Shown: positions 9,701 to 63,851, numbered from the stretch's first letter. The stretch: DNA of 64,000 nt from Macrostomum lignano (GCA_002269645.1 NIVC01002189.1:124001-188000); one strand, 5' to 3'. A program made the numbers and translations. The notes: generated by a model not told the origin, from the letters alone.

Positions 9701-9719
9701 GGTTGCCTCTCTGGTAGCT

Positions 9720-13523: not shown

Positions 13524-13604
<81 letters not shown>

Positions 13605-29326: not shown

Positions 29327-29942
29327 GTGAGCGGCTTTGAGGACTTGTTAGTTACCCGGAGCTTTGAGTGCCGCTTCAGGAAAGCATTTGAAGCTGAATC
29401 ATGCTTAATATAGATGCAAAATTGGTCAAATTGGATTGAAAGAAAATCTATAATTTCACATAGAAGCATACGAGCCAGCCCGTAAAAATAGACACACTCA
29501 AGCCCTGCCACTTGTAAAGTGCTCGCAACCAATTTTTCTATTGCAGCTCAGCGATGCTACCCTATTACAGCCGGGTGGGTGGTCAAATACCTCAGCATGA
29601 TAGATCATTCTCTTATTAACTGCCTACCTACGTACTAACCGCGGCCTGCTCTGCTTAACTAGCAGCGCTGGCGGTAAATGCGCTATTCACTTTGCTCTAT
29701 TCGCTAACGACCCCTGTAGGGTTTTCATAAGCGCCTTTAAATCTCATATAGGAGTGATATCAGATGTCTTTGCTAGTTTCTAGAATTGTTTTCCGGCTCT
29801 TTGCCAGTTACAAATTACAATGCTTCAGGTGTAAATGTTGCATAGACAAAATAATTGCCTATTTTGTCAAAAGGGTTCGGTCGTTCCTCAGTTACCAGGC
29901 ATGCATCGTTATGTTCCGACACTCCCTGCTCCGTTATTTCAG

Positions 29943-30311
29943 GAATTTACCTGGATATGGACGTACAGTGCGTCAGGCCATTCTTCCCAGCACTGGAGAA
30001 TTTTAACAGCTTTTTGGACCAGGAGCGAATCGAGCAGACGAACATCTTCTGGGGCTGGCCGTTCAGCGTGATGAACTCAGCAATGGGCTCCGCTCCCGGT
30101 CATCCGTTCTTCCGCGAGGTGATCAACGAAATGTTGCACAAGTCTCAGATTGGCAACGCGTTTGCCACCACGGGCCCGGCCATCCTCACCCAGGTGTACA
30201 AGCAATATACGGCTGTCAAGCCCGCGGTGCCGGTCACCCTGCTCGAGCCGAATGTGATGTCGCCCCTCATGGATGGCAACAAGAACTGGCGCAGCATGTG
30301 CGGCTCATTGG
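29943..30311 (+). CDS. GT32 glycosyltransferase copy 1, exon B
   Basis: Splicing gives GGIYLDMDV (DXD) ... NSAMGSAPGHPFF ... TTGP; canonical AG/GT, phase 1/1. Confidence 0.9.
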
Positions 30312-31912: not shown

Positions 31913-32127
31913 CTGCAGCCAAATCGAAGCCGGACTCGCGGCGCAGCTGGAAAGAGCGCGGCTGCATCATGCTTGAGTCGAAGAACTGGCGCTACGATGA
32001 CTCGGACAATTCCACAATCTGCGTTCACAGATTCCTTCATCTTGGCTACGGCTTCGCTGCCGGGGCGCGCAAGAAGCCGTTTAATGTCACTGCCCGCTTC
32101 TGGCCCCGGGTTCGAACTTTCAAATGA
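31913..32127 (+). CDS. GT32 glycosyltransferase copy 1, last exon
   Basis: ttttcAG acceptor, phase matches; AAAKSKPDSRRSWKERGC...TICVHRFLHLGY...RTFK-stop. Confidence 0.75.
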
Positions 32128-33679
32128 AGAGGTAACAGGTGGCTGACTGTCAAGTGCCTAAGCTTCTAGTGATGCCATTTCATAACAGAAGGAAAGTTCA
32201 CACTGCGAATTCAAAGAAACGCTTTGGAATGTCTCGTAGCTCGTTGGTGTTGCAATTCACAAATTTGATGGACTTTAGCCGCAGGACAGAAGCAGTAGTG
32301 TTAGTGTTTTAGAACATTTTCCTGTGCAAGAAGTGTCAAATACTCGTATTCCATGTCAAATGCAATAGTGTTTGCTTATTTTAAACAAGATCTTGCTCTT
32401 GTACTGTTTTGTCATTGAACCTTGATCCGAATTGACCCGATGGCTTAGCATGCACATGCACTATTCATCAGCTCATGCATCTCTACAGGTGCTTTGGAGG
32501 ACAGATTCTACTGTAAACTAGCCATAATTACGCTCGTTGTTACTTACCATCATTCGGTGGATGAGAGCACTGCCGCGTCTTGGCTGAATTTTGCGTATTG
32601 TTTGATTGAAACGAATTCTGACGGCTTGATGCGTGTCTGCTCATTCTGTCATATTCATCCTCCGCAGATGCAGCTATATTTTGCATGCGGCACCAATAGA
32701 TTTGTGATGAAGCGTCAGACGGACATGAAAACTTCAGTTATGAGCACAATTTCGTATAAAGATTCCCTATGACTCACAATTTACCGTACGGATATATTTT
32801 ACACATAATGCAATTGCGTTTCCGAGACTGTCAGATGCATTAGAAATTACATTTTTGCCAATCAGTTCATGTTCCAATGTGCTGTGATTAGTTTTGTTAC
32901 AAATAAGTAGCCGAATTAATTAATCTATAAAAGCTACAAATTCCCATGTAGGTTAAAGCATTGTAAGAGCGAAAATGACATTCCATCACTATAATCTATC
33001 TAATACTTGTATATCTAATATATAGTCTTTATTATGTTTCTACTTACTAGCTCTTATTATTTCAATACCTCGTGACTGAGGTGTGTCAATGTTTTCGCTT
33101 CAATTTTTCCAGCAAATGCCTATCGTAATGAATGCGACGAAGATTCAGATAGATTTAACTTCTTAAATTTAATTTGCGTTGAAAATTGAGTCCTGGTAGT
33201 AAGCGGCAGTCTTCGTGGCTGAGAGGCCGTGCTCTTAGAGCTACTGACTTGTGCAAGATTCATTTAGCTTGCACTATAAATGTAAAGCTTACTTCCCTAC
33301 GACTGCTTATAAAATCAAGAAAATTAGCCTATCAGGTAAGCCAGATAAAGCTGCATGTACGCGCGTTACTCACTTGTAACTCTACAGCCGCGAGATAACG
33401 AGAAAACCTACTTATAATGTACACCCGTAACAAAAAATTACCTGCTTTAAAAGTACTCGCATATTCTTCTAGCCAATAGGCATTACTCGTCAAGGAAATA
33501 CTGGATGACTCGAAAAAGATGCAGGAGCGTGTGGACTACTAGACGTAGTCGAAGACGTAGACGCTACTCTTGCAATTTCATTTTGATGCTAAAGATCAAC
33601 CTCTTCTTATTTTGTGGGCAGACATCGCCCTTCACTTAAAGAATTATAGCGTCTTTCTAGACGTATGTCACTTAAATCG

Positions 33680-34165
33680 TATGACGGCCGGTATGTATGG
33701 TCTAAGACGGCCGATGTATGTAGTCTAAGAGGGCCGATGTCTATGGTCTAAGACGGCCGATGTATGTAGTCTAAGAGGGCCGATGTCTATGGTCTAAGAC
33801 GGCCGATGTCTATGGTCTAAGACGGACGATGTCTATGGTCTAAGACGGCCGATGTCTATGGTCTAAGAAGGCCGATGTATGTAGTCTAAGAGGGCCGATG
33901 TTTATGGTCTAAGACGGACGATGTCTATGGTCTAAGAAGGCCGATGTCTATGGTCTAAGAAGGCCGATGTATGTAGTCTAAGACGGCCGATGTCTATGGT
34001 CTAAGACGGCCGATGTATGTAGTCTAAGACGGCCGATGTCTATGGTCTAAGAAGGCCGATGTATGTAGTCTAAGACGGCCGATGTCTATGGTCTAAGACG
34101 GCCGATGTATGTAGTCTAAGACGACCGATGTCTATGGTCTAAGACGACCGATGTCTATGGTAGAA
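33680..34165. repeat. 23-bp minisatellite (gtctatggtctaagacggccgat variants, ~21 copies)
   Basis: Tandem array visible; paralogue at 46650-47105. Confidence 0.9.
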
Positions 34166-35804
34166 GACGGCCGGGGGTCGGACACTGATTCAACTTGAAG
34201 CTTAACTCAGTGACTCAGCTCACAACGTTTCAGAAGCCTTCAGAGCGAAAAATGAAATTTCGAGCGTCTTTAACGCCTTGTAGGCCCTAAACGGTTTGAT
34301 ATGTAAAAAAATAAATTACATGCACTATACAACAAGACGGGACTTGATAAAACTAACATTTTTTACTTTCCTAAATTCAACCCTATAATGTACCGTGCTT
34401 TTCCTTTACAGATTGGGCCGTACCTCAGCTAGGAAACTTTACAAATAGCTCGATCTGTTGCACTTCCTGCCCACGGATATCTTTTTTATAGAAAAAGTTT
34501 CGTGACATTCGCTTGTACCATTGGCTGAGAGAGGAACCTTTCAGCTGCCTTTCTGCCTGCCCTATCTATGAGTGTAGGGTGAACACGAATTGTCCACCCT
34601 ACAATCCGTGCTCATTCTGAGTTCTATGGTTCTGTAGGGTGTAGAGAGCGTCTAGTCCAGTTTTACACAATTAATTTACGAGGGCCCGAGACAGGGTCAG
34701 AGCAGGAAATCTCAGTCTACTAGTGTGCTACATTGAGAAGTTATCGATCCTATTCTATAGGTTTTTCCTAGTCAAGTAGTCAACACAGCCAACTCAAATG
34801 CAATTAATTCAGTTTCAAGTTGCAACAAGTTGTAAATTGTCAATTTAGAGTTACCAAAAGACCAATTCAAGTGCGCCATAAGTGACGACTCATTGGGGAA
34901 TGGCCGATATGCTGATAGGCGGCTAGGCCGATATGCTAGGGTTAGGGTTTGGATTACGGCTAGGTTTAACAGTCGGATGCCGAAGCTATTTTTCCACTGC
35001 ACGGATGCCGATGGGGGGGGGTATTTCAAATACCCAAAAAGTTATCCACGCCATAACTCTTGAACCCGACGATGGATTCGTCTGAAAATTCACAGTACGG
35101 GCTAAAATTTATCGAGGAATCTGATGAAGCCATCGCCGGCTCTCTCCGACATCGAGATCGTTGAGATATTCAGCGATTCTCAAGGAGGTCCCCCTGTTGG
35201 CAGTAAGGTGCACAAAATGATCCCAAACCTCATTTCAGCCATTGGTGAGGTAACCCAGAACACTTTTAGTGCGCTACAACAATGCCCCGTGGCCACCGTC
35301 GACCATCGTCAGGACATTCAACGAGCACATTCTGACATCATCGGAATTTGAGATCCGAAACAAATTTCGGTCAAATATTTATTATGAAATCTTGTCAATG
35401 AGCAACCTACGACTCCTTCTTGCATTCAACCTACTTCCTGCACCACCCCGACCGTCTAAACGACCATCGGGACCTTCAACGGATGTTTCCATCGGACTTC
35501 TGGCAGTCTGCAATGATCTACAATAAACAGCATGCAATGGACGCATGAACCAAAAGTGTACATAGCAAGGCCTCCACTTTTTTCATTCACCGCCATGTCT
35601 TGTCCCACCGAAACTCATAAACCTGCCTTTGTGCCTGTCATTAAATTTGCAAGTTGCATAGTAAAAAAATTGTTTCCGCTCTGACAACAATCAAAATTTC
35701 AGTCCGAAATTAGACCATAACCGTTATAAGAGCATTTCGAATTTCTACTGCAAATTTATGTCGGCAGTTTTAAGCATAAAGCTTTCCAGTAAAACATGAT
35801 TAGG

Positions 35805-38800: not shown

Positions 38801-40095
38801 TAACGGTGGCCCCGGTTGTGGTACATGCAGGCCATGTTGTGGTGCATGAGACCACTGGCGTCGAGATCCGGGTGCTGCTTGAGCAGAAGCTGCCGCAGCT
38901 GCTCCCCGGACTTGATCCGCGCTGGCGGTCGTAATCCAAATCCGATGGCAGATGGTCTTCGGCCGCTCAAGCAACCCATGTTGCTGTGCCAGTCGAACTT
39001 GGGCAGCTCTTCTTGCAGGAGTTGGGTGCTCTCCTCGGATTTGCACCACAGGAGGATGCACCCGTGTTGGTCAGTGCAAGTCGAGAGCAAAGAGTTTGCA
39101 CAAGGCCCAACAACCCGTTTGTCTTGGTGGACTTGGCGATGTCCACGAAGACCCCCTTCAGGGTCAGGTTTAGCAGGCCCTCATCGACGTTACACCACGC
39201 GACACCGAGCTGCTCGGGTGTAGGGTCACTGTCCCCGCCGAGAAACATTACGGCAGGTTGAAGCGGCTGCTTGACCTTAGAGGCGTAGGTCTCCAAGATC
39301 GTGTGCGGGGCCGCTTTTTCGTTGGAAGGCGGTAGGCTGGCAGGGCTGACCGAGGACACGGTGGTTCCTGACGGTCCAGCTCGCCACCAGACTCCCCAGA
39401 GGCCTTCCCCGCCGCGGTGGCTTCCGAAGGCCTCACCGCGGCTTGCCCGCCCTCCACGGATGCAGCAGCAGCCGTTTGAGGTTGCGACGGATGTTGCGCT
39501 GGCGCCGAGCTTCGGCTGTGGCGCGGCCGGTTGGACTGACTGCCAGGTCGATCGGCGGCAGCGTTGGCTGGTCCGGTTGGACCAGGTTGTTCCGGGTTGG
39601 AGCTACCAGTTTTAGCTGCCGGAGCGGCTGATCGCGGTGGGCCAGTGGCGACTGGGTCAGTTTCGTCACTGGCGTTAGTGGCCATAGCTGAAAAGCGGTG
39701 GAGGGCTACTCGTTACGCGATTTAAGTACCCGACTGGCCGACACCCCCAAGACAGCTGGTTAAAAAAGGGACCGCTAGTGACCGGACTACTCCCCGGCCT
39801 TCCAGCCCATCAGCACGGTCAACACTTTATGCATTGGAGGGTACGTTATCAGTACAACGGCCTGCGGGCTGGCGAGCCTGACCAGCATACCCAAGTTCGG
39901 CCGAAGCCACTGGATAAGTTGCCAGCGTCGGAGCCCAGTCTGTCCAGCAGCCCTAGGGTCAGCCTTGAACACTCGCGGGGACGAGCAACACCTTGGTCGA
40001 CTTACGAAACAGCGTGGGTGGGGGTCTGCGTCTGCCCGAGGCAAATAGGGGTGCAGACCTCCCACCGGCCTTTACCTGCTGAAGATAGCTGGGCA
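35805..40095 (-). mobile_element. Degenerate near-full-length R1/LOA-like LINE (ORF1, APE endonuclease, RT; internal deletion removing RNase H)
   Basis: ORF1 from 39685 with TYASKV; MQVNLQHSIAA endonuclease start at 38154; RT fragments AFDNV and GNPQGGVRSPFPWNMVMD; C-terminal remnant ENEDFV*YCPAF; many frameshifts. Confidence 0.85.
36585..36819 (+). mobile_element. RTE LINE 3' fragment nested in the R1/LOA-like LINE
   Basis: Matches the 3' end of 24660-25613; (TTG)n tail; 7-bp TSD TGAGTAC. Confidence 0.8.
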
Positions 40096-40099
40096 GATT

Positions 40100-40482
40100 G
40101 ACTGATTGACTAACTGACTGACTGATTGAGTGAGTGGGTGACTGACTGACTGACTGACTGACTGACTGACTGACTGACTGACTGACTGACTGACTGACTG
40201 ACTGACTGACTGACTGACTGACTGACTGACTGACTGACTGACTGACTGACTGACTGACTGACTGACTGACTGACTGACTGACTGACTGACTGACTGACTG
40301 ACTGACTGACTGACTGACTGACTGACTGACTGACTGACTGACTGACTGACTGACTGACTGACTGACTGACTGACTGACTGACTGACTGACTGACTGACTG
40401 ACTGACTGACTGACTGACTGACTGACTGACTGACTGACTGACTGACTGACTGACTGACTGACTGACTGACTGACTGACTGAC
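40100..40482. repeat. (TGAC/TCAG)n microsatellite, ~90 units
   Basis: Directly visible. Confidence 0.97.
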
Positions 40483-40489
40483 CGCAAGT

Positions 40490-40575
40490 TTATAAGTGAG
40501 ATTGAGCTGACTGAGGCTGAGAGGCTCCGGGCGTCCGGATGCAGCAGTGAAACGTCCCCGTCCATTCCGCTAGAG
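40490..40575 (-). mobile_element. Short 3'-terminal fragment of R1/LOA-like LINE
   Basis: ctagcggaatggacgg...gctgcatccggacgccc matches the 3' end of the LINE at 49345-49405. Confidence 0.65.
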
Positions 40576-41040: not shown

Positions 41041-41793
41041 AGCAGAGAACTGATTCATCCTGACTCCAGGGCCTGTTGTGAGCTGCCACCAGCTCGCTTT
41101 GCCAGCCGCATGTGCTCTCAACGGGCTGGAGTTTGCTGAGCTCTGCACTGAGTAAAATTTTCCTTGCAGTTTCTTACTTTCCATTTGCTATGATGCCAGC
41201 TCGATTTCTACTCGTAGATACTCGTAGATGAGTCGTGTTGCGCGTTTTAAACTGTACTAAACATTCCAAAATGCATTGGAAACAAGAATGCTTCGCTTCC
41301 AGATCCTGCAGGCTTTGAATTCGTTTCCAACTTCGCTAAAGCTAGCTAGGAGAAACTGGCTGCTTTTAGAGATTAGGCAGTGTTGAAGGCGATTTCATTT
41401 CCGTGTAACTTCCCAGCAGCAATTGTCCCTACTGCGTCCGGAGCAAATAATTCTGGCGTTAATTTTTTATAGAAGCGAGACAGCCAGTTGCACACCAATT
41501 TTACTCTATAAGTAATTTTTTCTTGAAATTTCTACAAGTTCTATTTGCTATGATGCCAACAGACCTTCTGTTTCTGGATAGGCCCACTAGCAATGAGTCA
41601 TCAATAAGTTTGCATTACAAATCAGAATGCTTCATTTTCATATCCTGCTATTCCAACTTTAGCAGTCTTTGTGAAAAATATGTGATACTAAAGGTAGCGA
41701 TTTTGCCAAAAATTTTTTTGAGTTGGCCTCGGCAAAGCCATACGGCTCATCAGTCCGCACGCATTTCTCACCTCGACTTCCGCAATCTCCCAG

Positions 41794-42307
41794 GCAACGT
41801 GGAAAACTGCCGGCTGGTACTGGTCTGACGGTGAGGAAATTCCCAGGTCAGTCGTTTCGAGTCAATGGCCTTCTGTTGTGCCAAAGCCGCTGAACCCTGA
41901 GCCAAACAAGCCTCATGCACAGCAGGCGTTGACGCCGGCTCCAACTTCGCTAAAGCTAGCGACGCCAACTGCCAGAACTACACCTACAACTCAGAGTACG
42001 CGAACAACCACAAGAGCTGCAGTCGCGCCCACAAAGAAAGCTGTACCAGCGTTCAATTCGTCTGCTCGCATACCGCGAATTCTGCACCAGGCGTTTGCAT
42101 CCGAGATGGTCTACGAAAACTACCTGCCTTACATTAACGGCTGCATGTCGCTGAACCCGGACTGGACATATTATCTGTGGCGGGACAGCGACGCGGAGGC
42201 GCTGATCAGCTCCGCCTATCCGGAGTTTCTCGCCAAGTACAAGAAATACTCTGACGTGCTGGAGCGGGCCGACTCTATTCGGTACATTGTTCTGCACCAC
42301 TTTGGCG
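41794..42307 (+). CDS. GT32 glycosyltransferase copy 2, exon A
   Basis: Same structure as copy 1, open frame, same splice sites. Confidence 0.85.
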
Positions 42308-42923
42308 GTGAGCGGCTTTGAGGACTTGTTAGTTACCCAGAGCTTTGAGTGCCGCTTCAGGAAAGCATTTGAAGCTGAATCATGCTAAATATAGATGCAA
42401 AATCGGTCAAATTGGATTGAAAGAAAATCTATAATTTCACATAGAAGCATACGAGCCAGCCCGTAAAAATAGACACACTCAAGCCCTGCCACTTGTAAAG
42501 TGCTCGCAACCAATTTTTCTATTGCAGCTCAGCGATGCTACCCTATTACAGCCGGGTGGGTGGTCAAATACCTCAGCATGATAGATCATTCTCTTATTAA
42601 CTGCCTACCTACGTACTAACCGCGGCCTGCTCTGCTTAACTAGCAGCGCTGGCGGTAAATGCGCTATTCACTTTGCTCTATTCGCTAACGACCCCTGTAG
42701 GGTTTTCATAAGCGCCTTTAAATCTCATATAGGAGTGATATCAGATGTCTTTGCTAGTTTCTAGAATTGTTTTCCGGCTCTTTGCCAGTTACAAATTACA
42801 ATGCTTCAGGTGTAAATGTTGCATAGACAAAATAATTGCCTATTTTGTCAAAAGGGTTCGGTCGTTCCTCAGTTACCAGGCATGCATCGTTATGTTCCGA
42901 CACTCCCTGCTCCGTTATTTCAG

Positions 42924-43292
42924 GAATTTACCTGGATATGGACGTACAGTGCGTCAGGCCATTCTTCCCAGCACTGGAGAATTTTAACAGCTTTTTGGAC
43001 CAGGAGCGAATCGAGCAGACGAACATCTTCTGGGGCTGGCCGTTCAGCGTGATGAACTCAGCAATGGGCTCCGCTCCCGGTCATCCGTTCTTCCGCGAGG
43101 TGATCAACGAAATGTTGCACAAGTCTCAGATTGGCAACGCGTTTGCCACCACGGGCCCGGCCATCCTCACCCAGGTGTACAAGCAATATACGGCTGTCAA
43201 GCCCGCGGTGCCGGTCACCCTGCTCGAGCCGAATGTGATGTCGCCCCTCATGGATGGCAACAAGAACTGGCGCAGCATGTGCGGCTCATTGG
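42924..43292 (+). CDS. GT32 glycosyltransferase copy 2, exon B
   Basis: GIYLDMDV DXD exon, 369 nt, canonical splice sites. Confidence 0.9.
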
Positions 43293-44896
43293 GTGAGATC
43301 CCTTTTGGAGCTTAAATTAATTGTGCAGAGAGTTTAGGCAGGGAAAAATGACTAGTGACAAAAATAAGCAGAACGCTCAACGACTCGGACTGCTGCGACC
43401 TCATTCTGGGTTGTTTAGTGGTTGTTGTTGCTAAATCACAGACGTTATTTGCGCAGAGGAAATGCTCGATTGATCAGTCACCACTTAGCTTCTAAAAGTA
43501 TACTTGCTTGTAAAACTTGACCTTGCAGTGCCGAAGCATTCACTTTGGAAACCTTACTATGATAACAGCGACGAGTATTGCTCTATGTAGCTGTTGCTCG
43601 TGCAGTACAGCGGCTTAGAAAGTCGTACTTAGCGATTCTGTGCATATTTTAGCCTAGATAACAATTGGTGAGGTAGCTCGTACATGCGCTTAAATTTGGT
43701 AGTAGTATTTCACTATCAGCTACATGTGTGTGTACTAGCATGAAATGAAGCTCATCTTCAGACTGGAGCTGAAGGGTACGAGAATACAATGTAGAGACGT
43801 AATTAGGGGTTAAATAGGAGATCAATTTTCATAGCAGTCGTACTTATGCAATTCCGCCGCAATCAATAACTACGGCCCGGCATACATGGGACACGCTGCC
43901 AAACATAAAAGAGACGCGCGACCGCCATGCATGTGGATATGAAATACGTCTCACAACCCGAGCAGTTGTGAGACACTCTGCTGCACAATTTTTCTCTTAC
44001 TGCAATGCTTAGTATTGGCAAACGTTGGTCTTATCTACGTGTGAGTCACATTTAGCAAACCCTGAATAGCTAGCGATATAGCTGAGAGCGAGCAAAGTCT
44101 TGCGGAAGAGAGTGGAAATATGAATTCACATTTTTCCAAGTCGAGTCTTTGACCGGCTAGCTGGGTGCGTGCACAAGTCTGTCAGTTAATCTGCTTTCAA
44201 AACTTTTGCTTGACTGAATCGATAGGCACAAATAGCTGAAGGCGTGCAATTTTTCTACTTTTAAAAGCAGACAACACTTCAGTAAAGTTAGCAGATCCTG
44301 TAAGCAGGCGTCTATTCAGCTGATTCAACAAGAGCGGATTAAAAACTGGAGTGACATGCGCGAATGACACACACAGACACATGCGGAACTTTTTCCCTGA
44401 CGATTTTCGGGTTGATGAAATTGTTGACACACGCACGGAGTGAAGGCGCGGGTTTTTATTATCGATAGTTGAGAAAACTCTGCAAGAACAGTAGTCGAAT
44501 GTTTTTTGTGAAAAAAGGGTTCCTAGGGGAAACAGGCACGCCATCAAGCCGCTCTGTTTTGCATGCGTAAGCTCTACAATTTCAACGCTGGCTGTCAGAG
44601 AAGATTTTAGTCAGATCTGATTTGGCATTCAGTGAGGACTGAGGATCAAACAGCAGTGAGGATCTTGATTGCGCTGGTAGTTTCATTCTATGAACAATGA
44701 GAGACCGGGAGGAAGCAGTAGGATCCCAGGCAGTAGTCGCTCTCTCCCGCATTACCATCGCCGGACTGGGGCTGCACGGTTCTCTCCTCCAGATACTTAT
44801 AAAGGCAGTACAGTGCTTGGCCGGAGAGAGAGTTTACTAGCTATACTACTGGATTGGAATCTATTAATAATTTAATTTTATGACCCCGCTTTTCAG

Positions 44897-45111
44897 CTGC
44901 AGCCAAATCGAAGCCGGACTCGCAGCGCAGCTGGAAAGAGCGCGGCTGCATCATGCTTGAGTCGAAGAACTGGCGCTACGATGACTCGGACAATTCCACA
45001 ATCTGCGTTCACAGATTCCTTCATCTTGGCTACGGCTTCGCTGCCGGGGCGCGCAAGAAGCCGTTTAATGTCACTGCCCGCTTCTGGCCCCGGGTTCGAA
45101 CTTTCAAATGA
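44897..45111 (+). CDS. GT32 glycosyltransferase copy 2, last exon
   Basis: 215 nt, in phase, ends TGA. Confidence 0.75.
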
Positions 45112-46649
45112 AGAGGTAAACAGGTGGCTGACTGTCAAGTGCCTAAGCTTCTAGTGATGCCATTTCATAACAGAAGGAAAGTTCACACTGCGAATTCAAA
45201 GAAACGCGTTGGAATGTCTCGTAGCTGGTTGGTGGACTTAGCTGCAGGGCAGAAGTAGTAGTGTTAAGTGTTTTAGAACATTTTCCTGTGCAATAAGTGT
45301 CAAATACTCGTATTCCATATCAAATGTAATAGTGTTTGCTTATTTTAAACAAGATCTTGCTCTTGTACTGTTTTGTCATTGCACCTTGATCCGAATTGAC
45401 TGGATGGCTTAGAATGCACATGAACTATTCATCAGCTCATGCATCTCTACAGGTGCTTTGGAGGACAGATTCTACTGTAAACTAGTCATAATTACGCTCG
45501 TAGTTACTTACCATCATTCGGTGGATGAGAGCACTGCCGTGTCTTGGCTGAATTTTGCGTATTGTTTGATTGAAACGAATTCTGACGGCTTGATGCGTGT
45601 CTGCTCATTCTGTCATATTCATCCTCCGCAGATGCAGCTATATTTTGCATGCGGCACCAATAGATTTGTGATGAAGCGTCAGACGGACATGAAAACTTCA
45701 GTTATGAGCACAATTTCGTATAAAGATTCCCTATGACTCACAATTTACCGTACGGATATATTTTACACATAATGCAATTGCGTTTCCGAGACTGTCAGAT
45801 GCATTAGAAATTACATTTTTGCCAATCAGTTCATGTTCCAATGTGCTGTGATTAGTTTTGTTACAAATAAGTAGCCGAATTAATTAATCTATAAAAGCTA
45901 CAAATTCCCATGTAGGTTAAAGCATTGTAAGAGCGAAAATGACATTCCATCACTATAATCTATCTAATACTTGTATATCTAATATATAGTCTTTATTATG
46001 TTTCTTCTTACTAGCTCTTATTATTTCAATACCTCGTGACTGAGGTGTGTCAATGTTTTCGCTTCAATTTTTCCAGCAAATGCCTATCGTAATGAATGCG
46101 ACGAAGATTCAGATAGATTTAACTTCTTAAATTTAATTTGCGTTGAAAATTGAGTCCTGGTAGTAAGCGGCAGTCTTCGTGGCTGAGAGGCCGTGCTCTT
46201 AGAGCTACTGACTTGTGCAAGATTCATTTAGCTTGCACTATAAATGTAAAGCTTACTTCCCTACGACTGCTTATAAAATCAAGAAAATTAGCCTATCAGG
46301 TAAGCCAGATAAAGCTGCATGTACGCGCGTTACTCACTTGTAACTCTACAGCCGCGAGATAACGAGAAAACCTACTTATAATGTACACCCGTAACAAAAA
46401 ATTACCTGCTTTAAAAGTACTCGCATATTCTTCTAGCCAATAGGCATTACTCGTCAAGGAAATACTGGATGACTCGAAAAAGATGCAGGAGCGTGTGGAC
46501 TACTAGACGTAGTCGAAGACGTAGACGCTACTCTTGCAATTTCATTTTGATGCTAAAGATCAACCTCTTCTTATTTTTGGGCAGACATCGCCCTTCACTT
46601 AAAGAATTATAGCGTCTTTCTAGACGTATGTCACTTAAATCGTATGACG

Positions 46650-47105
46650 GCCGGTATATATGGTCTAAGACGGCCGATGTATGTAGTCCAAGAGGGCCGA
46701 TGTCTATGGTCTAAGACGGCCGATGTATGTAGCCTAAGAGGGCCGATGTCTATGGTCTAAGACGGCCGATGTATGTAGTCTAAGAGAGCCGATGTCTATG
46801 GTCTAAGACGGACGATGTATGTAGCCTAAGAGGGCCGATGTCTATGGTCTAAGACGGCCGATGTATGTAGTCTAAGAGAGCCGATGTCTATGGTCTAAGA
46901 CGGACGATGTATGTAGTCTAAGAGGGCCGATGTTATGGTCTAAGACGGCCGATGTCTATGGTCTAAGACGGACGATGTATGTAGTCTAAGAAGGCCGATG
47001 TCTATGGTCTAAGACGGCCGATGTTTGTAATCTAAGACGGCCGATGTCTATAGTCAAGACGGCCGATGTCTATGGTCTAAGACGACCGATGTCTATGGTA
47101 GAAGA
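46650..47105. repeat. 23-bp minisatellite, copy in duplicate 2
   Basis: Same unit as 33680-34165 with a different order of variants. Confidence 0.9.
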
Positions 47106-48449
47106 CGGCCGGGGGTCGGACACTGATTCAACTTGAAGCTTAACTCAGTGACTCAGCTCGCAACGTTTCAAAAACCTTCAGAGCGAAAAATGAAATCCGA
47201 GCGTCTTTAACGCCTTGTAGGCCCTAAACGGTTTGACATGTAAACAAATGAATTTCATGCACTATACAACAAGACGGGACTTGATAAAACTAACATTTTT
47301 TACTTTCCTAAATTCAACCCTATAATGTATCGTGCTTTTCCTTTACAGATTGAGCCATACCTCAGCTAGGAAACTCTACAAATAGGTCGATCTGTTGCAC
47401 TTCCTGCCCACGGATATCTTTTTTATAGAAAAAGTTTCGCGACATTCGCTTCCTAATATCGAATTATCCCTTAGCAGAAAGAGGAATCTTTCAGCTGCCT
47501 TTCTGCCTGCCCTATCTCTTTGAGTGTAGGGTGAACACGAATTGTCCACCCTACAATCCGTGCTCATTCTGAGTTCTATGGTTCTGTAGGGTGTAGAGAG
47601 CGTCTAGTCCAGTTTTACACAATTAATTTATGAGGACCCGAGACAGGGTCAGAGCAGGACATCTCAGTTTACTAGTGTGCTACATTGAGAAGTTATCGCT
47701 CCTATTCTATAGGTTTTTCCTGGTCAAGTAGTCAACACAGATTGCTTCCATGTCAAGGCTTCATGAAGAGAATTACTGAAATGCTGGGGCTGCTGGGGAG
47801 AATTTCTGAGACGTCAAGGTTCATTAGAAAAATTGCTGAGATATCTGTCATGACTTATGGGGTGGGGCCGCGCGGTAGGGGTGAAGCTTGTTTAGTAAGC
47901 CTTGTGAGCAGTACGTACGGTATGTACATGCGCGGGCCACCGTGCCCCTTGGCCTATAAAATATACAGAGCGTGGAGGGTTTTGCCTCAAGTGAGTTACT
48001 CCAAAATAAGCGATTGACTTGACTTCATTACAATATCAACAATGGAGTTGCTGAGATGTCAAGGCTCATGAGGGGATTGCTGAAATGCTGTGGCTCATGG
48101 AGGGGGTTGCTGAGATGCCAAGGGTCAATTGGAAGCTGTTGGTAGGCCAAGCCGAAGGTAGATCAAAGAGGAGTTAGGATTAAGCCATGGCATAAAAGGG
48201 AAGCTTTGATGCCAAAGCTCACAGGGGATGCTAATATCTTAGGCTGGATAGCTGACTTTCAGGGCTCATGACTTTTACATTAAGCATCATTTTACTTCGA
48301 ATACTAACAATGGAGGCTTTTCCCCTCCTTTTTCGCTCTGGCCTGGCGCGGAAGCGGTTAGCTTCCTCGTCTTGGTCTGCTGGTGGAGGACGGATCCCCC
48401 CTGCTGCTTTTTTGCAGGGCAGGTGGCTGCTAAGTAGTTGGCTGCTGGC

Positions 48450-51499
<3,050 letters not shown>

Positions 51500-51957
51500 G
51501 TATTAAACTCACAAGAGACTGTACATTTACGAGCTATATTGTCTAATTTGTGTAAAATAGGGTTAAAAAACTAATTGTTGTCCTGCTGAATGCTACTTGA
51601 CGCAATATTATCAGCGCTTCAAATTTATTCAGCAGATAATTTCAGCAATCATAGAATATAGAAGAGAGCAGGGTAAACGTTAAGGATATTCAGGTTATCA
51701 AAAACCGAAAGACATTGACACATCTCAAATAGCTTTTTTCTGACACGAATTATTGTAGCTAGTTTTAGTGCCACCACCACAAAAATAATTCTGTAGCGAA
51801 ACTCCACTGTTCATGAACATGTACTTTTTTATTATGACAGTAACATCTAAAATTACTCAAAAAGATTCGGCACATGAAATCCGTGTCAGCTATTTGGACC
51901 CGCTAAATACTAACCTAATAGGAATGGAAAGAATCACACTATAACACAATAGTGCGG

Positions 51958-52115: not shown

Positions 52116-52359
52116 CGAAAATTACACTAACACCATATTCATCAAGCGAAGTTTGAACTCTCCAAACATGCTAATATAAATCACTACTGTGTTGAAAGCA
52201 CACTCTAGAGCTCTACCGAGTTCATTGCACAGGTTCAAATTATAGACAGGTTGCAAAAAAATTGCGTCCACTGAGTAACACATTGTTGAGGCACACAGCA
52301 GTTAACTGACTTCACGATTCTGAAACTTTAAAAAACCAGCTCCACAGGACGAATCAAAG

Positions 52360-53825
52360 GACTGGCTGCAGCCTGCCTGCGTGGGAAGTGTCTGTTGCTG
52401 CTCCTGAGCAGCTAGTAAACAAGATGTGGCTAATGCGTCCGCGATATCGGAATGCTCGCTGTTAATTGTTGATGTAGGTCTTCTCTTTAAGGCATGTCGC
52501 TAGCGTTGCTGACTTCAGAAGCTGCGAAGAAAAGAAATTAAGATAGGTTTGATTTAGTAATAATTAATGGTCTAATCGAGAACTCTTTAATAGAATGTGT
52601 TCAACTAATGCTGGGTCTGTTTCAAAAAGTCAGAAGGAGTCGCGACTAGAATCAGCACTGTCCCAATAAGTGCGACATAAAATAGGCTGAAAAATAAGCC
52701 CAGCTGCAATGATGTCCCAATAAATGCCCCGCAAATTACCACACTTGAGCTAGGCTAGGCTGTGTTTGCTAGGCGTAGATTGTGTCCCAACAATGCCTCT
52801 GAGATTGCTTACATTGATTTTAAAGTGCCAAGCTGCAATGATGTCCCAATAAATGCCCCGCAAATTACCACACTTGAGCTAGGCTGGGCTGTGTTTGCTA
52901 GTCGTAGTTTGTGTCCCAACAATGCCTCTGAGATTGTTACATTGATTTCGAATTGTGCTCTACCGGGCAACACAAATACTCTGGTTACTTCCACAGCAGA
53001 TAATGCTCACCCAGAACAGATCGCCTCTTTCTCTTTAATCCTTTGCCGGACGAGTTGTCTTTAGCTCCACAAGACAAATCATCAATAGACTGGCTGCAGC
53101 CTGTCTGCATGAGAAGTGTCCGTTGCTGCTCCTGAGCAGCTAGTAAACAAGATGTGGCTAATGCATCCGCGATATCGGAATGCTCGCTGTTAATTGTTGA
53201 TGTAGGTCTTCTCTTTAAGGCATGTCGCTAGCGTTGCTGACTTCAGAAGCTGCGAAGAAAAGAAATTAAGATAGGTTTGATTTAGTAATAATTAATGGTC
53301 TAATCGAGAACTCTTTAATAGAATGTGTTCAACTAATGCTGGGTCTGTTTCAAAAAGTCAGAAGGAGTCGCGACTAGAATCAGCACTGTCCCAATAAGTG
53401 CGACATAAAATAGGCTGAAAAATAAGCCCAGCTGCAATGATGTCCCAATAAATGCCCCGCAAATTACCACACTTGAGCTAGGCTAGGCTGTGTTTGCTAG
53501 GCGTAGATTGTGTCCCAACAATGCCTCTGAGATTGCTTACATTGATTTCGAATTGTGCTCTACCGGGCAACACAAATACTCTGGTTACTTCCACAGCAGA
53601 TAATGCTCACCCAGAACAGATCGCCTCTTTCTCTTTAATCCTTTGCCGGACGAGTTGTCTTTAGCTCCACAAGACAAATCATCAATAGACTGGCTGCAGC
53701 CTGTCTGCATGAGAAGTGTCCGTTGCTGCTCCTGAGCAGCTAGTAAACAAGATGTGGCTAATGCGTCCGCGATATCGGAATGCTCGCTGTTAATTGTTGA
53801 TGTAGGTCTTCTCTTTAAGGCATGC
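52360..53825. repeat. Tandem ~600-730 bp duplication (units at 52360, 53088, partial at 53688)
   Basis: Near-identical units; unit 1 has an extra ~128-bp internal duplication. Confidence 0.9.
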
Positions 53826-55247
53826 CACTTAGCGGCTGAACCTGTGCGTACAAAGGAAAAAGGAAAACAGAAATCTATGTCGATGTCCTAATAAATTCTT
53901 CATTGCAAATGAAATTATGGTGTGTAACTAAAATGTGAGCGTGTAGTTTGTCCCAACAGTGCCGTCTATTTAGTCATTCAGATGAACTTTACATCTCACT
54001 GTCCCAATAGCCCTGCACAAATTCACTCTCTCACTCTAGCTGTCTGCAGACTTGTTTGTTCCAATAAGCCCCTAGAAAGCAAAACACATTCCGATTCAGT
54101 TCCAGTTATGGAATGTGCAAGTTTCTGAGATTCTTTTTTTTGCCATCTTCCCAACCAAATCTTCCATAGAGAGCATTTTTGCTGCTGGCTTTACTCTGTT
54201 TGTCTTTGCAATATGCTCTTCGCGGTCTAGAACATTCTCATTTTTCATATTGTCCGAATAGAATAATTTAAAATTGGCCAAGCGCTCAATAAGTATTGTT
54301 TTTGGCTCCGCGCATGGCTGTGGCGCTGCAGCGATTTGGATGTGCCCAAAATGCTACTTGCGAAACCGATGTCAATTTCATTCAATAAACAACTATTTTG
54401 CTTCTCGTAGTGGGCTGCTTCTAAATTTTTACCATGCACAAAAATATCCACATATACATGTAATATGACTTACTTGACAATAAAGGCAATTCGCTTGATA
54501 GAAGAAAACGATTGCTGAGCAAATTTACATGTACATATATCTGGAATTGTAAAAATACATTTTAAGCTTGATTAGTTAAGTTTAGTTAAGTTAAGTTTAT
54601 GAATCCTAAAAAGGATCTTTAAATTCAACTTACATATTTGTAATGGTTCCTACGCTCGTATAGCCAAGTTTCCATGGAAAGAGGTCATGGAACTCTTGTG
54701 CCTTGGGCACATTTCGCCTGTGTAGGGCAGGCCTCGTAAATGAACTACATTCTTTTACCATATGCAGGATGCTGTTTGCCAAAGCGAACTTCTACCATTC
54801 TATTAAGATTTCGGGCCCGTTCTATAAAGCCATTGTAAGATAAGATCGTTCTTAGCTCCTATGGGCCCGTTCTATAAAGCTTGCGTATCCTTAAGTTCGA
54901 ACTTACGTTCGTACCGTGTCGTAAAATGTTCGGTGAAACCATCGTATCTTAAGACCGTTCTTAGATTTAAGAAGCTTCTTAAGTCATCGGGCACGCGTAA
55001 ATTTGCGTTCGGTGAAACTTTCGTAAGTCACTTCGGCTTCTTAAGTTCCGCCGTAAATCTAAGACAGGTCGGACCTGTCGTAAGTCACTCTTTAGTTGTG
55101 AAAATGCACAGCGCCGACTTCATTCAGACAAAAAAATTGCATTTAAGTTTAAAGCATGTAAGTTTAAAGACTGAAAAAATCAAACAATAGCGAAATTTGT
55201 TAATTTGAAGTTTGAGTAGCAAGAAACACAAATTTTGTTTAAGTAAG

Positions 55248-56285
55248 TCACGGTGGGAGTAGCTCAATGATCCGCTGCCTTTCTGCTCGACCAGCAGCGG
55301 TGTCTTCAGCCAGTGCGGCTTCATTTTCAGCAGTTGCTTCCATGGCTAGCGGCTGATGTTCAGGTGGAAGTGGAACGGCTCTGGCCACGGCGAAATTGTG
55401 GAGCACGCAGCATGCAACAATGATGTTGCACACTTTACTCGGATTGAATTGTAAAGCTCCTCCGCTGTGATCGAGGCATCGAAATCTTGCTTTCAAAACA
55501 CCAAAAGCCCTCTCGATTGTTACGCGCGTTTTGCTTAGTCGCCGGTTGAAATTTTGCTCGGAATTTGTTTGTGGATCCCTAAATGGCGTCATCAGAAACG
55601 GTCGGAGTGGGTAGCCCGCATCTCCAACCAAGAAGCCAGCGACCTTCCCATCCGCGAGGAGATCTTTCAGTGCAGATTGTTGAAAAATGAAGGAGTCGTG
55701 GCTACTGCCAGGCCAACGTGCGACAACGTTTGTAAATGCGAGATTGGCACTACATACGGCCTGAACATTAATCGAGTGAAATCCTTTTCGATTAATGAAG
55801 ATTCCACCGTCATCGGTAGGGCGCCGGATGCGGATGTGCGTGCAGTCTATGGCTCCGAGCACCTGAGGCATTCCGGCAATTTAAAAAAATGCACGTGCTG
55901 ATGCTGCTGCTGCTTGCTGATTGCTTGGAAACGAAATGCAAATGGGTGCCATGTCCTGAAGTAGCAGGCAACCTCCAGTCACAACTCCGGACACCGTGAC
56001 GCAGCTACAGTTGAAAACGTCCCCAATGACTTTGAGAAAGCTGCCTGTTGCAAAAAATCGGAGGGCAAGGCAAACCTGCAGTTCGACGGAAATAGCTCTG
56101 TTGCGACGCGTCTGACGTTGTAGTTGCGGCCGCAGCAACTCAATGAGCTCCAGCAAAAGTTGACGTGGCAGCCGGTACCGCTCGAAAATTTCCCGATTAC
56201 TGAAGTCGAGAGGGTCAAGTCTGTCTCGAAACCTTCTCTCAGTTCTCAAAGCATGCTGAGCGAATGCGATGTCCAAAAAATTCAT
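55248..56285 (-). pseudogene. Harbinger DDE nuclease (HARBI1-like) with one in-frame TAA at 55883-55881
   Basis: LALRFFATGSF...GAIDCTHI...LVGDAGYPL...IERAFGVLKARFRCL; the two track ORFs are in the same frame. Confidence 0.9.
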
Positions 56286-56689
56286 TCTCGGATCTGACTT
56301 TGGCAATTGCAAGTGAGTTAGCAATCCGATGGGGAATTTCAGCGCTAAGTTCTTGAAGCATAAGTTGCTTCAAATAGATAATTAGATAATAGATTTTATT
56401 GGTTAATTAAGTAAGTTTTAAGAGGGCCCGGGGCTGGTGTCAAACCACTCTAATTATCCTTAACTTTATGTCCCCTATACTGTGTGACTGGCTGACCGTC
56501 TTATCAGGCCGACCTGATAATTGCTCCTCAAATATACGTTCGCATCACATAATTGATTTTGCCGTCGAAGGGTTGCAAACAGCCTTGACCAATCGACATT
56601 TAAGTAGAGTGGCAATTACGCTCGTATAGCTCGTATAACAGCATAAAGAGAAGCTGATACGGTCGAAAGTGCCAAATAATTGGAATGCA

Positions 56690-57473
56690 ATGAATTCTTA
56701 CGCAGCACAAAAACGCGCGGCGAACTGGTCAACGGCGGAACTGGAGACGCTGCAAGAAGCAACGACCGAACGGAAAAGTTACCTGGAGAGCCCCAAGCGA
56801 ATTTTCGCAAGAAACGCGGATGGCAGCAAATTGCCGATATCGTGAATGCAGTCGGTGGACAAGGACGTTCTGGAGAGAACTGCCGAAAGCGGTGGTCCGA
56901 CTTCAAGAGTCAACTGAAGCACAAAGTAGCCAGCATCCGCAAGGAGCAAGCTAAGACGGGAGGCGGTCCATCGCAGGCCCCACAGCTGTCGAGTTTAGAG
57001 GAGAAGGCGGCGCAGTCCATCCGAAAACAGGTCGTGGAAGGCGTGCCACGTGGTGTTGACACGCTGCAGCTGCCTAAATCCAATAGTGCAGCATCAAGCT
57101 TGGCGGCCAAGTACATTGATATCGCAAGTGCGCCTGCTGATGAATTTTCCGAAGCTGTTGGCAGAAGCACATCGCCTGAGTACGAGACAGCTGACGACGA
57201 AAAAAGTGAAGAGTCTGTTGCTAACCCCGCTGCCAAGAACACGAAGCGTCAGCGAAAGCAGAGCAAACTTGGGCTGATCGAAAGCTTAGAAATAAAACGT
57301 CTTCGGGTGGAGGAAGCTCGATTGGAAGTTGAAAACGACAGATTGTTTGTCGAGAGAGAGAGAGGCTGAAGATCGAGACGGAACGTCTACGCGTTGAGCA
57401 GGAAAGACTGACGATAGAAAATAAAAATCGAGGCAATGAGAGCAGTCAACAGCTTAATTTTAATGACATGTGA
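56690..57473 (+). pseudogene. Harbinger Myb/SANT-like DNA-binding protein with two frameshifts
   Basis: MNSYAAQKRAANWSTAELETL..[fs ~56790]..WQQIADIVNAVG..RSGENCRKRWSDFK..[fs in (GA)n ~57360]..coiled coil. Confidence 0.85.
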
Positions 57474-60690: not shown

Positions 60691-61010
60691 TTTGTTACGT
60701 TAAATATATTTATATATATTCGGAAACGGAAACTGCCGAGTGTAGTTGATATAGGAGCCAAAAAGGTTATTCAACTTAACAATTATATTTGCTAACTAAC
60801 TAAATAAATCTTAAATTCTTTCTTCCACCGATATTTAGCAACTTATTACAGCATTGATTAATTACTCTGACGTACAAGGCTGTAGGGTAGGCACAAAACC
60901 AAAAACAAAACACAAGGCTAGCGCGGACTCGCTACGAGCACGTAGTTTAGACTAGAGTCTTAAGGCCGGCTCACATTACCGCTACCAATGTACAGTTGGT
61001 TGGCATGCCT

Positions 61011-61520
61011 AGTCTATGGTAGCTGTTGCTAGCTGGAGCTATTCTGCATAGTCTATGGTAGCTGTTGCTAGCTGGAGCTATTCTGCATAGTCTATGGTAG
61101 CTGCTGCTAGCTGGTGCTATTCGGCATAGTCTATGGTAGCTGCTGCTAGCTGGTGCTATTCGGCATAGTCTATGGTAGCTGCTGCTAGCTGGTGCTATTC
61201 TGCATAGTCTATGGTAGCTGCTGCTAGCTGGTGCTATTCGGCATAGTCTATGGTAGCTGCTGCTAGCTGGTGCTATTCTGCATAGTCTATGGTAGCTGCT
61301 GCTAGCTGGTGCTATTCTGCATAGTCTATGGTAGCTGCTGCTAGCTGGTGCTATTCGGCATAGTCTATGGTAGCTGCTGCTAGCTGGTGCTATTCTGCAT
61401 AGTCTATGGTAGCTGCTGCTAGCTGGTGCTATTCTGCATAGTCTATGGTAGCTGCTGCTAGCTGGTGCTATTCGGCATAGTCTATGGTAGCTGCTGCTAG
61501 CTGGTGCTATTCTGCATAGT
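61011..61520. repeat. 39-bp minisatellite (~13 copies), paralogue of the 44-bp array
   Basis: agtctatggtagctgctgctagctggtgctattctgcat tandem. Confidence 0.95.
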
Positions 61521-61573
61521 CTGCTCGTACTGCATAATTTCTCAAAGCAGCGATTTTCTCCCGACTATCTAGG

Positions 61574-61905
61574 TAGGGATCGGCAAACTATTTTACCTTA
61601 AGGGCCAGATAGAGAACCTTGCACCGGCCCAGAAGAGGAGGAGAGAGGAGAGAGGAGAGAAGAGAGAAGAGAGAAGAGAGAAGAGAGAAGAGAGAAGAGA
61701 GAAGAGAGAAGAGAGAAGAGAGAAGAGAGAAGAGAGAAGAGAGGAGAGAGAAGAGAGAAGAGAGGAGAGAGAAGAGAGAAGAGAGGAGAGAGAAGAGAGA
61801 AGAGAGAAGAGAGAAGAGAGAAGAGAGGAGAGAGGACAGAGAAGAGAGCAGAGAGGACAGAGAAGAGAGCAGTGAGGAGAAAAAGAATGTTTAGCGATTT
61901 TCTAG
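61574..61905 (+). mobile_element. hAT/Charlie-like element with GA-rich core
   Basis: Left end tagggatcggcaaactattttaccttaagggccagatag, core ~61630-61885; right end weak. Confidence 0.5.
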
Positions 61906-62360
61906 ACACCTGTTATCTTATGCCTTCAGACAGTGGAGGAAAAAACGACAGCACCGAAGATGCTTTTTGTCGTCACATTTTAGATATAAAACCAGCAGTG
62001 CCTCTTTGGGCCTCAAGATCGTGTGCGTTCTCTACAACTTCATCCCCTGCCACCGATGGTGTTGGATACCGCTTAGTTAGCGGGTTTACACAACAGCGCA
62101 TGCAATCAAATCAGAAATAGACCTGCCCATTACTACGGGGCGAGGGTTAGGTGGTTAGCTGGTCGGGGTTGGCCATCAGTCCCGGACGTGCCAGCTGCTC
62201 CTCTCAAGGAGCGGCCTCCGCGCCGGGCTCATTTAGAATCCTCCGGCCGGCCGTGTCGGCCTGTCAACCGTCTGGGTCAACTTTCCGCCTCGCCTTTGAG
62301 TCTAAAATGAATGGGAACTGCTGTAGCCTTTCCATGCGCTGCTTGTACTATTGTAGACCC

Positions 62361-63652
62361 TATGAGCTGCATAGAATGCCGCCATATTTCCGAAGTGCGG
62401 CTGCGCCTAAAACGCGTAATTTGCATTTTTTCGATGTAGCATAAGAGTTTACGGTCCCACGCGCATGTTCTTCAGTGTTTCAAATAAAAAGGAGAGACAG
62501 TGGAGGCGCTCGCTTCACTTTTCTCTCGCCCGCATTTGCGGGCCTAAAGGCATGGCCACTGACCGTGCTTCGAGTTCAATTCTTTGTTATCCGACGTGAG
62601 CAGAAGGTGCAGGCAGGACGCAAAATCCTACCTGTTACAATGGTTCCCTGACCTCGTGAGTCTGCTGGACGAAATTCCTGTCACGAAGGATAACAGAGGG
62701 TTGAATAGAAGCCAGTTGACGGACAGCACAACATCAACAAATCAGGATCCGGCGACCAGAGGACATCTTGCGTCGTTGGTGTGCTTGACGGCATTAAGTC
62801 GGAACGGTGGTTCAGTTCAACTGCCACCACGGTGCAGCCGCAGCCCCAGCTGACGCGTGTTCAACAGCCGTTCGGATGGATCGACAAGAAGAGTCAGCCC
62901 CGACGTCACTGTCTCGGCGACCGGCATGCAGATCAATTTTCCTGCCCTGAGAGGCGATCCGTCTCAAAAGCGGAGCAGTGTTTCGGTCCAAAGGCCAAGA
63001 GTCGTCTCTCCACAGCAAGAAGTCTGTGAGGGAAATTTGCGGTGCATCCGGAAAGAAGACCGGAGCACGATCGATGCATGCAATGGACATGCCAGTCAAG
63101 CTACTTAAGATAGCTCACGAGGACTGCATGCCCGCGTTTCCGAGGTGGCGGACTTCGATGCTGACCCCCTTAGAGCAGCGCGTATTGAGGAATGGTGCGA
63201 CCCGGCTGGAGGAGTTCAACATTACTATACTAATGGCTGGTATTTTCAAGTACGGTTCAACTTTCAACAATACTTCGGGGTGTCGAAGTTTTTTGAACCA
63301 CGGAGGGATATGAGCTGCATAAAATGCCGCCATATTTCCGAAGCGCGACTGCGCCTAAAACTTGCTGCGTAATCTGCATTTTTTCTATGTCCCCCACAAG
63401 AGTTGTGGGGCATAAGAGTTTACGTTAACACGCGCAAGTTCTTCAGTGTTTCAAATAAAAAGGAGAGACAGTGGAGGCGCTCGCTTCACTTTTCTCTCGC
63501 CCGCATTTGCGGGCCTAAAGGCATGGCCATTGCCTCGGCTGGGCTGTAGACCGCAGCAGCCTGGGCCCAGAAATACCGTGCTTCGAGTTCAATTCTTTGT
63601 TATCCGACGTGAGCAGAAGGTGCAGGCCGGACGCAAAATCCTACCTGTTACA
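62361..63652 (+). mobile_element. Non-autonomous LTR retrotransposon (TRIM-like), 1292 bp
   Basis: LTRs 62361-62639 and 63309-63652; 5-bp TSD GACCC on both sides; PBS TGGTTCCCTGACC (62641-62653, tRNA-Glu 3' end); PPT GGAGGGA (63302-63308). Confidence 0.88.
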
Positions 63653-63851
63653 GACCCTGCCTGTTTACCCAGCTCTATTGTTCTAGCTTAATTTCTAAGC
63701 CCTGAGGGAGAGAGGAGAAGCAGGGGAGAAAAAGAGAGGAGAGGAGAGGAGAGAGAAAAGGTAGAGCGGAGGTGAGAGAGAACATAACTGAGAAGCGAAT
63801 TCCGCAATCTGTACTTCTATACTTCTCACCTCGACTTCCGCAATCTCCCAG

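Follow-up and report, generated by a model that had tools for sequence, protein, structure and literature searches.

The locus analysed here raises the question of what kind of unit occupies positions 62361-63652 of a 64-kb stretch of Macrostomum lignano DNA (the whole stretch analysed, referred to as the window), where two long direct repeats enclose a short interior, and whether this unit belongs to a family that moves. The window is repeat-rich eukaryotic DNA that contains RT/RNase H open reading frames (ORFs), a PIF/Harbinger transposase with its Myb partner and tandem arrays, and none of the families in Rfam was found in its 64 kb. The unit (the mini-LTR element) is very probably one copy of a non-autonomous, non-coding TRIM-like family of LTR retrotransposons from M. 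lignano or a very close relative. The window copy has a total length of 1292 nt, and a second complete copy, described below, measures 1320 nt. The parts of the window copy are as follows.

62356-62360, plus strand: left target-site duplication (TSD) GACCC, equal to 63653-63657 and directly abutting the LTR end; TTAAG in this position in the second copy
62361-62639, plus strand: 5' LTR, 279 nt, TATGAG...GTTACA, lacking a 42-nt segment carried by the other three LTRs
62483-62488, plus strand: AATAAA, candidate poly(A) signal or TATA-like box of putative function, opening a block conserved between the copies
62492-62543, plus strand: two hairpins in the R/U5-like part of the LTR, seen in fold prediction only
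62567-62599, plus strand: U5 arm of the predicted U5-leader stem, pairing with 62681-62712
62640-63308, plus strand: non-coding interior, 669 nt, with no Pfam match and no significant open frames
62641-62653, plus strand: primer-binding site (PBS) TGGTTCCCTGACC, 1 nt (A, 62640) past the 5' LTR
62681-62712, plus strand: leader arm of the predicted U5-leader stem, 100% conserved between the two copies
63302-63308, plus strand: polypurine tract GGAGGGA, abutting the 3' LTR, in the same context in the second copy
63309-63652, plus strand: 3' LTR, 344 nt, with an 18-nt palindromic insertion of its own and retaining the ancestral 42-nt segment
63653-63657, plus strand: right TSD GACCC, equal to the left TSD

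Repeat finding and pairwise alignment recovered the two direct repeats (279 nt and 344 nt) whose lengths had been given in a preliminary description of the locus, and the exact 5-bp TSD named there was found on both sides, so that the junctions (marked by a slash) read GACCC/TATGAG...GTTACA/GACCC. The first ~10 nt of the LTRs are TATGAGCTGC and the last ~10 nt CCTGTTACA. Alignment of the two window LTRs gave 267 identities over 279 positions (95.7%; K2P 0.044; 6 transitions and 6 transversions); they differ in addition by three indels (5, 18 and 42 nt), with the extra nucleotides lying in the 3' LTR in each case. The 18-nt palindromic insertion (63391-63408) is private to the window 3' LTR; the 42-nt segment (63533-63574 in the 3' LTR) is ancestral and was lost from the window 5' LTR. 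Between the window copy and the second copy, the R/U5-like two-thirds of the LTR are 94-96% identical and the U3-like first third 77-80%. As a separate observation, 10 of the 12 mismatches within the window pair fall into the U3-like first third (8.8% divergence) and 2 into the R/U5-like part (1.2%). Even decay is expected after insertion, and the LTR pair of the second copy is free of such a U3 skew. Only part of it is accounted for in the window pair by a complex local event near the palindromic insertion.

The PBS lies 1 nt past the 5' LTR, as proposed in the preliminary description, and its 13 nt are the complement of ...GGUCAGGGAACCA-3', the 3' end of human tRNA-Glu (the sequence used being the human one and not that of the host). 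A tRNA-Glu gene with a 3' end of ...CGGTCAGGGAA (plus CCA) would match the PBS. A published reverse primer for human tRNA-Glu-TTC-4-1 begins TGGTTCCCTGACCGGGAATCGAA..., and its first 13 nt equal the PBS of the window copy (PMC12217144). The PBS string occurs a single time in the 64-kb window. In the second copy, the corresponding sequence is A followed by TGGTTCCCTGACCG, which lengthens the complementarity to human tRNA-Glu to 14 nt. No tRNA genes were found in the window (searched with ARAGORN) or in the 20-kb locus of the second copy. The purine tract reported next to the 3' LTR was likewise located, although it comprises just 7 nt (GGAGGGA); it is kept in both copies, and the junction CAACCACGGAGGGA/TATGAG is the same in the window copy and the second copy.

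RNA folding predicted an uninterrupted 19-bp helix (62574-62592/62688-62706) that encloses the PBS and is prolonged by two 5-bp extensions (62567-71/62708-12 and 62595-99/62681-85). The fold of region 62560-62720 has a minimum free energy of -62.8 kcal/mol (z = -5.5), and a helix of at least 19 bp was obtained in 0 of 500 dinucleotide shuffles, the longest being 15 bp. The predicted U5-leader stem is thus statistically exceptional. The same fold was predicted for the second copy, and both arms are invariant, the U5 arm in all four LTRs and the leader arm in both interiors. Since nothing varies in the arms, there is no covariation, and the support for the stem consists of statistics and conservation. 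Placement of the PBS within a U5-leader stem is typical of retroviral and LTR-retrotransposon leaders. Further upstream, the AATAAA motif at 62483-62488 precedes the two predicted LTR hairpins, the first formed by GAGAGA..AGUGGAG with CUUCACU..UCUCUC and the second by GCCCGC-AUUU-GCGGGC. Taken as a whole, the architecture of the window copy is far beyond chance.

The second complete copy was located through an M. lignano protein record matching the element (P0004; GenBank PAA68538.1, 'hypothetical protein BOX15_Mlig010462g1'), which led to contig NIVC01001389.1 of assembly GCA_002269645.1 (Mlig_3_7) and, within it, to a 20-kb locus (L001) holding the full copy. This copy consists of an LTR at 9388-9712, an interior of 670 nt at 9713-10382 and an LTR at 10383-10707, with LTRs of 325 nt each, and is bounded by the 5' junction CTTAAG/TATGAGCTGCAT... 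and the 3' junction ...CCTACCTGTTACA/TTAAGAAA. Its TSD is TTAAG, its ends are TATGAG and GTTACA as in the window copy, and the two loci have no sequence in common beyond the element. The two known complete copies thus occupy independent sites with unrelated flanks, each with its own TSD (GACCC and TTAAG), and multiple copies with distinct 5-bp TSDs, which the preliminary description had put forward as the observation that would support it, have been found. The unusual TATG start reported for the window LTRs recurs in all four LTRs, and the boundary is fixed by the TSDs. Because the termini of the second copy are identical, TA...CA is a trait of the family and not a boundary error. An alternative boundary, with a TG...CA LTR and an imperfect 7-bp TSD, was ruled out, since the TATG of the L001 copy directly follows its own exact 5-bp TSD. 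The core of the earlier reading, a miniature non-autonomous LTR element with TA...CA ends and a PBS of the tRNA-Glu type, therefore holds, and the mini-LTR family is transposing, non-coding and TRIM-like.

The LTR pair of the L001 copy is identical at 319 of 325 positions (98%), with no indel and a K2P distance of 0.019. By this lower LTR divergence, the L001 insertion (1.9%) is younger than that in the window (LTR divergence 4.4%). No empty site was seen for either of them.

The interior was examined for coding capacity in view of the alternative that the element is a gag-only (TR-GAG-like) or LARD-like derivative, whose interior would be a decayed, lineage-specific gag of a once semi-autonomous family. 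Two observations speak for such an origin: one frame of the window interior contains just 2 stops in 222 codons, and gag proteins of flatworms are poorly conserved, as remarked for the element 'lennie' (PMC4558846). Dinucleotide shuffling, however, yielded a frame with 2 or fewer stops in 10% of cases and an open run of 119 codons or more in 40%. The near-open frame is moreover not preserved in the L001 interior, whose plus-strand frames contain 6, 6 and 11 stops. The two interiors are 91% identical (K2P 0.091) and are separated by indels of 2, 1, 2, 1 and 1 nt; as these shift the frame, no ORF is conserved between the copies. The longest ORF in the window interior comprises 111 aa, and one of 60 aa is also present. 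Among 1.84 billion representative proteins, no homologue of the 111-aa ORF was found beyond copies of the mini-element. A weak match to it (E=2e-7, 41% identity, four stretches) was obtained with P0005, a 222-aa tandem-repeat protein, and is most likely repeat-driven and spurious. No Pfam domain was detected in the 669-nt interior in any of the six frames at E<=10, a profile search that the preliminary description had called for and that bears out its statement that the interior carries no recognisable gag or pol. The ORF of PAA68538.1, in turn, is not conserved in the window copy, and the gene models that cover copies of the element read them in differing frames and on both strands. Conservation of the interior is highest in its first ~90 nt (PBS and leader) and its last ~30 nt (the region of the polypurine tract), and variation is highest in alignment columns 570-660, proximal to the tract. 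The interior is without coding capacity, and descent from a decayed gag is improbable, although it survives better than the other alternatives.

A second alternative would make the window copy the singular product of an internal deletion in an ordinary autonomous LTR retrotransposon, a dead end from which no family propagates. Internal deletions are frequent in LTR elements, and the interior contains no recognisable function beyond the PBS, the leader and the polypurine tract. The copies found at other sites stand against it. In addition to L001, an unrelated locus at which the same interior of 669-670 nt and the same borders occur next to a different 5-bp TSD, the interior was found in at least three further copies. 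When six-frame translations of the interior and the LTRs were compared with protein collections, the matches listed included only M. lignano proteins (P0001-P0004). P0001 (UniProt A0A1I8IHV5, 'Anoctamin') contains two separate stretches that correspond to window positions 62757-63133, with shifting frames. P0002 and P0003 have one stretch in common, on the minus strand, that covers LTR positions 63640-63478 (the 42-nt segment among them) followed by interior positions 63039-62856 and so keeps the LTR-interior order of the mini-LTR element. The copy count thus amounts to at least five (the window, L001, two in P0001 and one in P0002/P0003), with counts based on proteins being lower bounds. No second copy was detected inside the 64-kb window by blastn with the LTR and the interior, and there were 0 matches in metagenome contigs (searched with two exact patterns) and in viral contigs. 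The presence of the same short interior at several loci indicates that the short form itself was repeatedly reverse-transcribed and integrated. The one-off deletion is thereby largely refuted and has become very improbable, in favour of a propagating TRIM-like family. The P0002 copy is nearer to L001 than to the window copy, which suggests that the family may comprise sub-families, as judged from sequence similarity.

The weakest alternative, in which segmental or tandem duplication or recombination, rather than retrotransposition, produced the repeat pair, could appeal to the many tandem arrays and the 13-kb segmental duplication in the window, but is refuted, and its probability close to nil, given an exact TSD, PBS, polypurine tract and U5-leader stem all at canonical positions and a second copy with a different TSD in unrelated flanks.

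The duplications of the window were recorded in their own right. A segmental duplication of ~13 kb connects 28447-34788 with 41340-47740 through collinear blocks of 94-100% identity at a distance of 12.9-13.0 kb, and each of its copies contains a 23-bp tandem array (33542-34232 and 46528-46965). Further tandem arrays occupy 24-991, 1174-2103, 12830-14090, 27478-28481, 39992-40500 and 60928-61881; periods of 28, 24/71, 44, 8/12 and 39 bp were found, besides long GA-rich tracts. An ORF of 578 aa inside a GA-rich tract (12651-14387, minus strand) has no Pfam match and is probably spurious. At 52353-53980, a ~300-nt repeat occurs three times at a spacing of 600-728 nt, interleaved with a 110-nt repeat (52698-53535). 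An ORF for a PIF/Harbinger-type DDE_Tnp_4 transposase (E=8e-42) adjoins a Myb/SANT-like DNA-binding ORF (55248-55871, minus strand, and 56680-57369, plus strand), a pairing of two genes that is usual for Harbinger elements. The mini-LTR element itself is preceded, at ~480 bp, by the end of the 39-bp array and of a GA microsatellite. The glycosyltransferase exon that had been placed just downstream of the element was not recovered: neither flank contained a Pfam domain at E<=1 (the downstream flank comprising only 348 nt), and no protein matches were obtained from the flank frames.

Among described elements, the taeniid tapeworm family ta-TRIM (Koziol et al. 2015, PMC4558846) comes closest. Like the mini-LTR family, it consists of flatworm LTR mini-elements of ~1-1.3 kb that encode no protein, and the two share a PBS complementary to a tRNA (human tRNA-Glu in the case of the mini-LTR family) next to the 5' LTR, a polypurine tract ahead of the 3' LTR, short TSDs and interiors of ~600-670 nt without ORF or BLASTX match. 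According to the same publication (PMC4558846), ta-TRIM has LTRs of 198 nt with TG..CA ends, a PBS of 9 nt for tRNA-Leu placed 4 nt from the LTR, a polypurine tract of 15 nt, TSDs of mostly 4 bp and 'lennie' as its proposed partner, whereas the mini-LTR family has LTRs of 279-344 nt with TA..CA ends, a PBS of 13-14 nt of the tRNA-Glu type at a distance of 1 nt, a polypurine tract of 7 nt, TSDs of 5 bp and no known partner. Moreover, ta-TRIM was reported to be absent from non-taeniid flatworms (PMC4558846). Membership in ta-TRIM was ruled out on the basis of the tRNA-Glu-type PBS and 5-bp TSD, as opposed to tRNA-Leu and 4 bp; set apart by the published description of ta-TRIM, the two are analogous and not related.

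With classical plant TRIMs, as summarised in PMC6934838 and PMC4558846, the family shares the order LTR, PBS, short non-coding interior, polypurine tract and LTR, the 5-bp TSD and, presumably, the dependence on a partner. The same sources describe these elements (Witte et al. 2001) as shorter than 1 kb, with repeats of 100-250 nt and TG..CA ends, whereas the copies of the mini-LTR family found so far measure 1.29-1.32 kb overall, with longer LTRs (279-344 nt) and a TA start. As regards size, the class assignment depends on the definition applied. Two terminal direct repeats around a short interior are present in the window copy and in L001. At 1292 and 1320 nt, both copies lie within the broad limit of <4 kb in the Wicker classification, as quoted in PMC4558846, and both exceed the strict limit of <1 kb, as their LTRs (279-344 nt) exceed repeats of 100-250 nt. 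Canonical TG...CA termini are lacking, as all four LTRs begin with TATG and finish with TACA. Because TA..CA is a recognised non-canonical type of end, this makes the family a variant of the TRIM type and does not exclude it from the class. TA...CA ends are on the motif list of LTR_retriever and were detected in an annelid genome survey. They are also found in Hopscotch of maize and in Copia families of lotus, a comparison that extends to the terminal dinucleotides only; those are autonomous Copia elements of plants, whereas the mini-LTR element is non-autonomous and comes from a flatworm. Copia elements usually make 5-bp TSDs.

Helenus, Ajax, Cassandra and the LTR retrozymes are likewise TRIM-type elements of animals or plants, and some Helenus families of bivalves use a tRNA-Glu primer, as proposed for the mini-LTR family; the TSD of animal Helenus comprises 4 bp, in contrast to the 5 bp found here (PMC10886601; PMC4918200). 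Helenus, Ajax and Cassandra contain LTR promoters derived from small RNAs, and retrozymes a hammerhead, neither of which was found in the LTRs of the mini-LTR element: no tRNA-like sequence was detected there by ARAGORN and no 5S-like or hammerhead sequence by Rfam, at the gathering threshold and at E<=5. Assignment to the Helenus, Cassandra, Ajax or retrozyme sub-type was therefore ruled out. Heat-shock elements as in other M. lignano LTRs were also searched for in the mini-LTR element and not found. TRIMs have been reported in ants, taeniids and bivalves, and Helenus/Ajax in six animal phyla. The view that animal TRIMs are sporadic, as expressed in the preliminary description, is somewhat dated, as TRIMs, well known in plants, have been reported from at least eight animal phyla; its taeniid example, ta-TRIM, stands. 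With TRIMs on record in several phyla of animals, their presence in a flatworm is expected biology. The family is new, the class of mobile DNA to which it belongs is already known, and its mechanism is unsurprising.

The anatomy is consistent with the general cycle of LTR retroelements, the steps of which are summarised in PMC4558846. An RNA would be transcribed from the 5' LTR and packaged, through its leader, by Gag that an autonomous LTR element supplies. The minus strand would then be primed by host tRNA-Glu annealed to the 13-14-nt PBS held in the predicted U5-leader stem, and the plus strand by the GGAGGGA tract. Finally, the integrase of the partner would insert the TA...CA-ended cDNA at a 5-bp staggered cut. 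Priming by tRNA-Glu is proposed from the complementarity of the PBS to the human tRNA, and mobilisation in trans by an autonomous LTR element from the general cycle. Transcription of the mini-element is likewise indicated indirectly, as PAA68538.1, a gene model derived from a genome-guided transcriptome annotation, sits in sense orientation inside the L001 copy (10001-10270), where it represents an ORF within the TRIM interior. The GenBank annotation of Mlig_3_7 was based on a genome-guided transcriptome, from which transcripts overlapping annotated repeats had been removed (PMC5730564).

An autonomous partner with the same LTR ends or PBS was not found inside the 64-kb window by blastn and PBS search; for M. 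lignano as a whole, consensus sequences of 137 LTR retrotransposon families have been published (Ustyantsev et al. 2025). Two window ORFs carry a reverse transcriptase, namely an open frame of 909 codons with RVT_1 and RNase_H domains (48776-51502, minus strand) and a second RT fragment (24643-25353, plus strand). No integrase was detected in them and they have nothing in common with the mini-element, and they were rejected as the autonomous partner.

The family was probably overlooked by the published M. lignano repeat pipelines. In the 2017 annotation, LTRharvest was run with '-motif tgca -motifmis 0 -mindistltr 1000 -seed 100' and unclassified elements were discarded (PMC5730564). In the mini-LTR family, the LTRs begin with TA, the distance from one LTR start to the next is 948 nt in the window and 995 nt in L001, the longest exact run common to the two window LTRs measures 92 nt, and no protein is encoded by which the element could be classified. 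A re-mining published in 2025 began from RT domains (DARTS; PMC12801592), which made it blind to non-autonomous elements. The filters used, demanding TG..CA ends, at least 1000 nt between the LTRs and a 100-nt exact seed, or else an RT domain, would account for the omission. That the element is apparently unannotated, as previously suggested, gains indirect support from these filters, which exclude the family, and from the survival of the gene model PAA68538.1 through the removal of repeat overlaps. In the literature searched, no mention was found of Macrostomum together with 'retrotransposons in miniature' or of the gene ID Mlig010462.

As a consequence of this omission, gene sets have been contaminated: mini-element sequence is carried by at least three chimeric UniProt models and by a 'hypothetical protein' of GenBank. 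In UniProt, TRIM-derived 'exons' are part of the chimeric models A0A1I8IHV5 ('Anoctamin'), A0A1I8HEF9 ('PARP catalytic domain') and A0A1I8H3Z5 ('Apple domain'), and the four public M. lignano protein records with mini-element sequence are annotation artefacts. The strongest form of the proposal, in which an undescribed TRIM family of M. lignano with TA...CA ends is still active and transcribed and is absent from every published repeat annotation, is put forward tentatively and is, as it stands, rather unlikely.

For M. lignano itself, the finding is of use in cleaning up the annotation. The mini-element further provides a clean example of a conserved, predicted U5-leader stem around the PBS of a non-coding element, and a defined cis-only substrate that could reveal its autonomous partner in an animal in which transgenesis works. 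If the family were indeed active and transcribed, it could give rise to chimeric transcripts and to abundant non-coding RNA driven by its LTRs, similar to ta-TRIM in the stem cells of tapeworms, and it would represent the first TRIM whose host is tractable for transgenesis and thereby for tests of trans-mobilisation.
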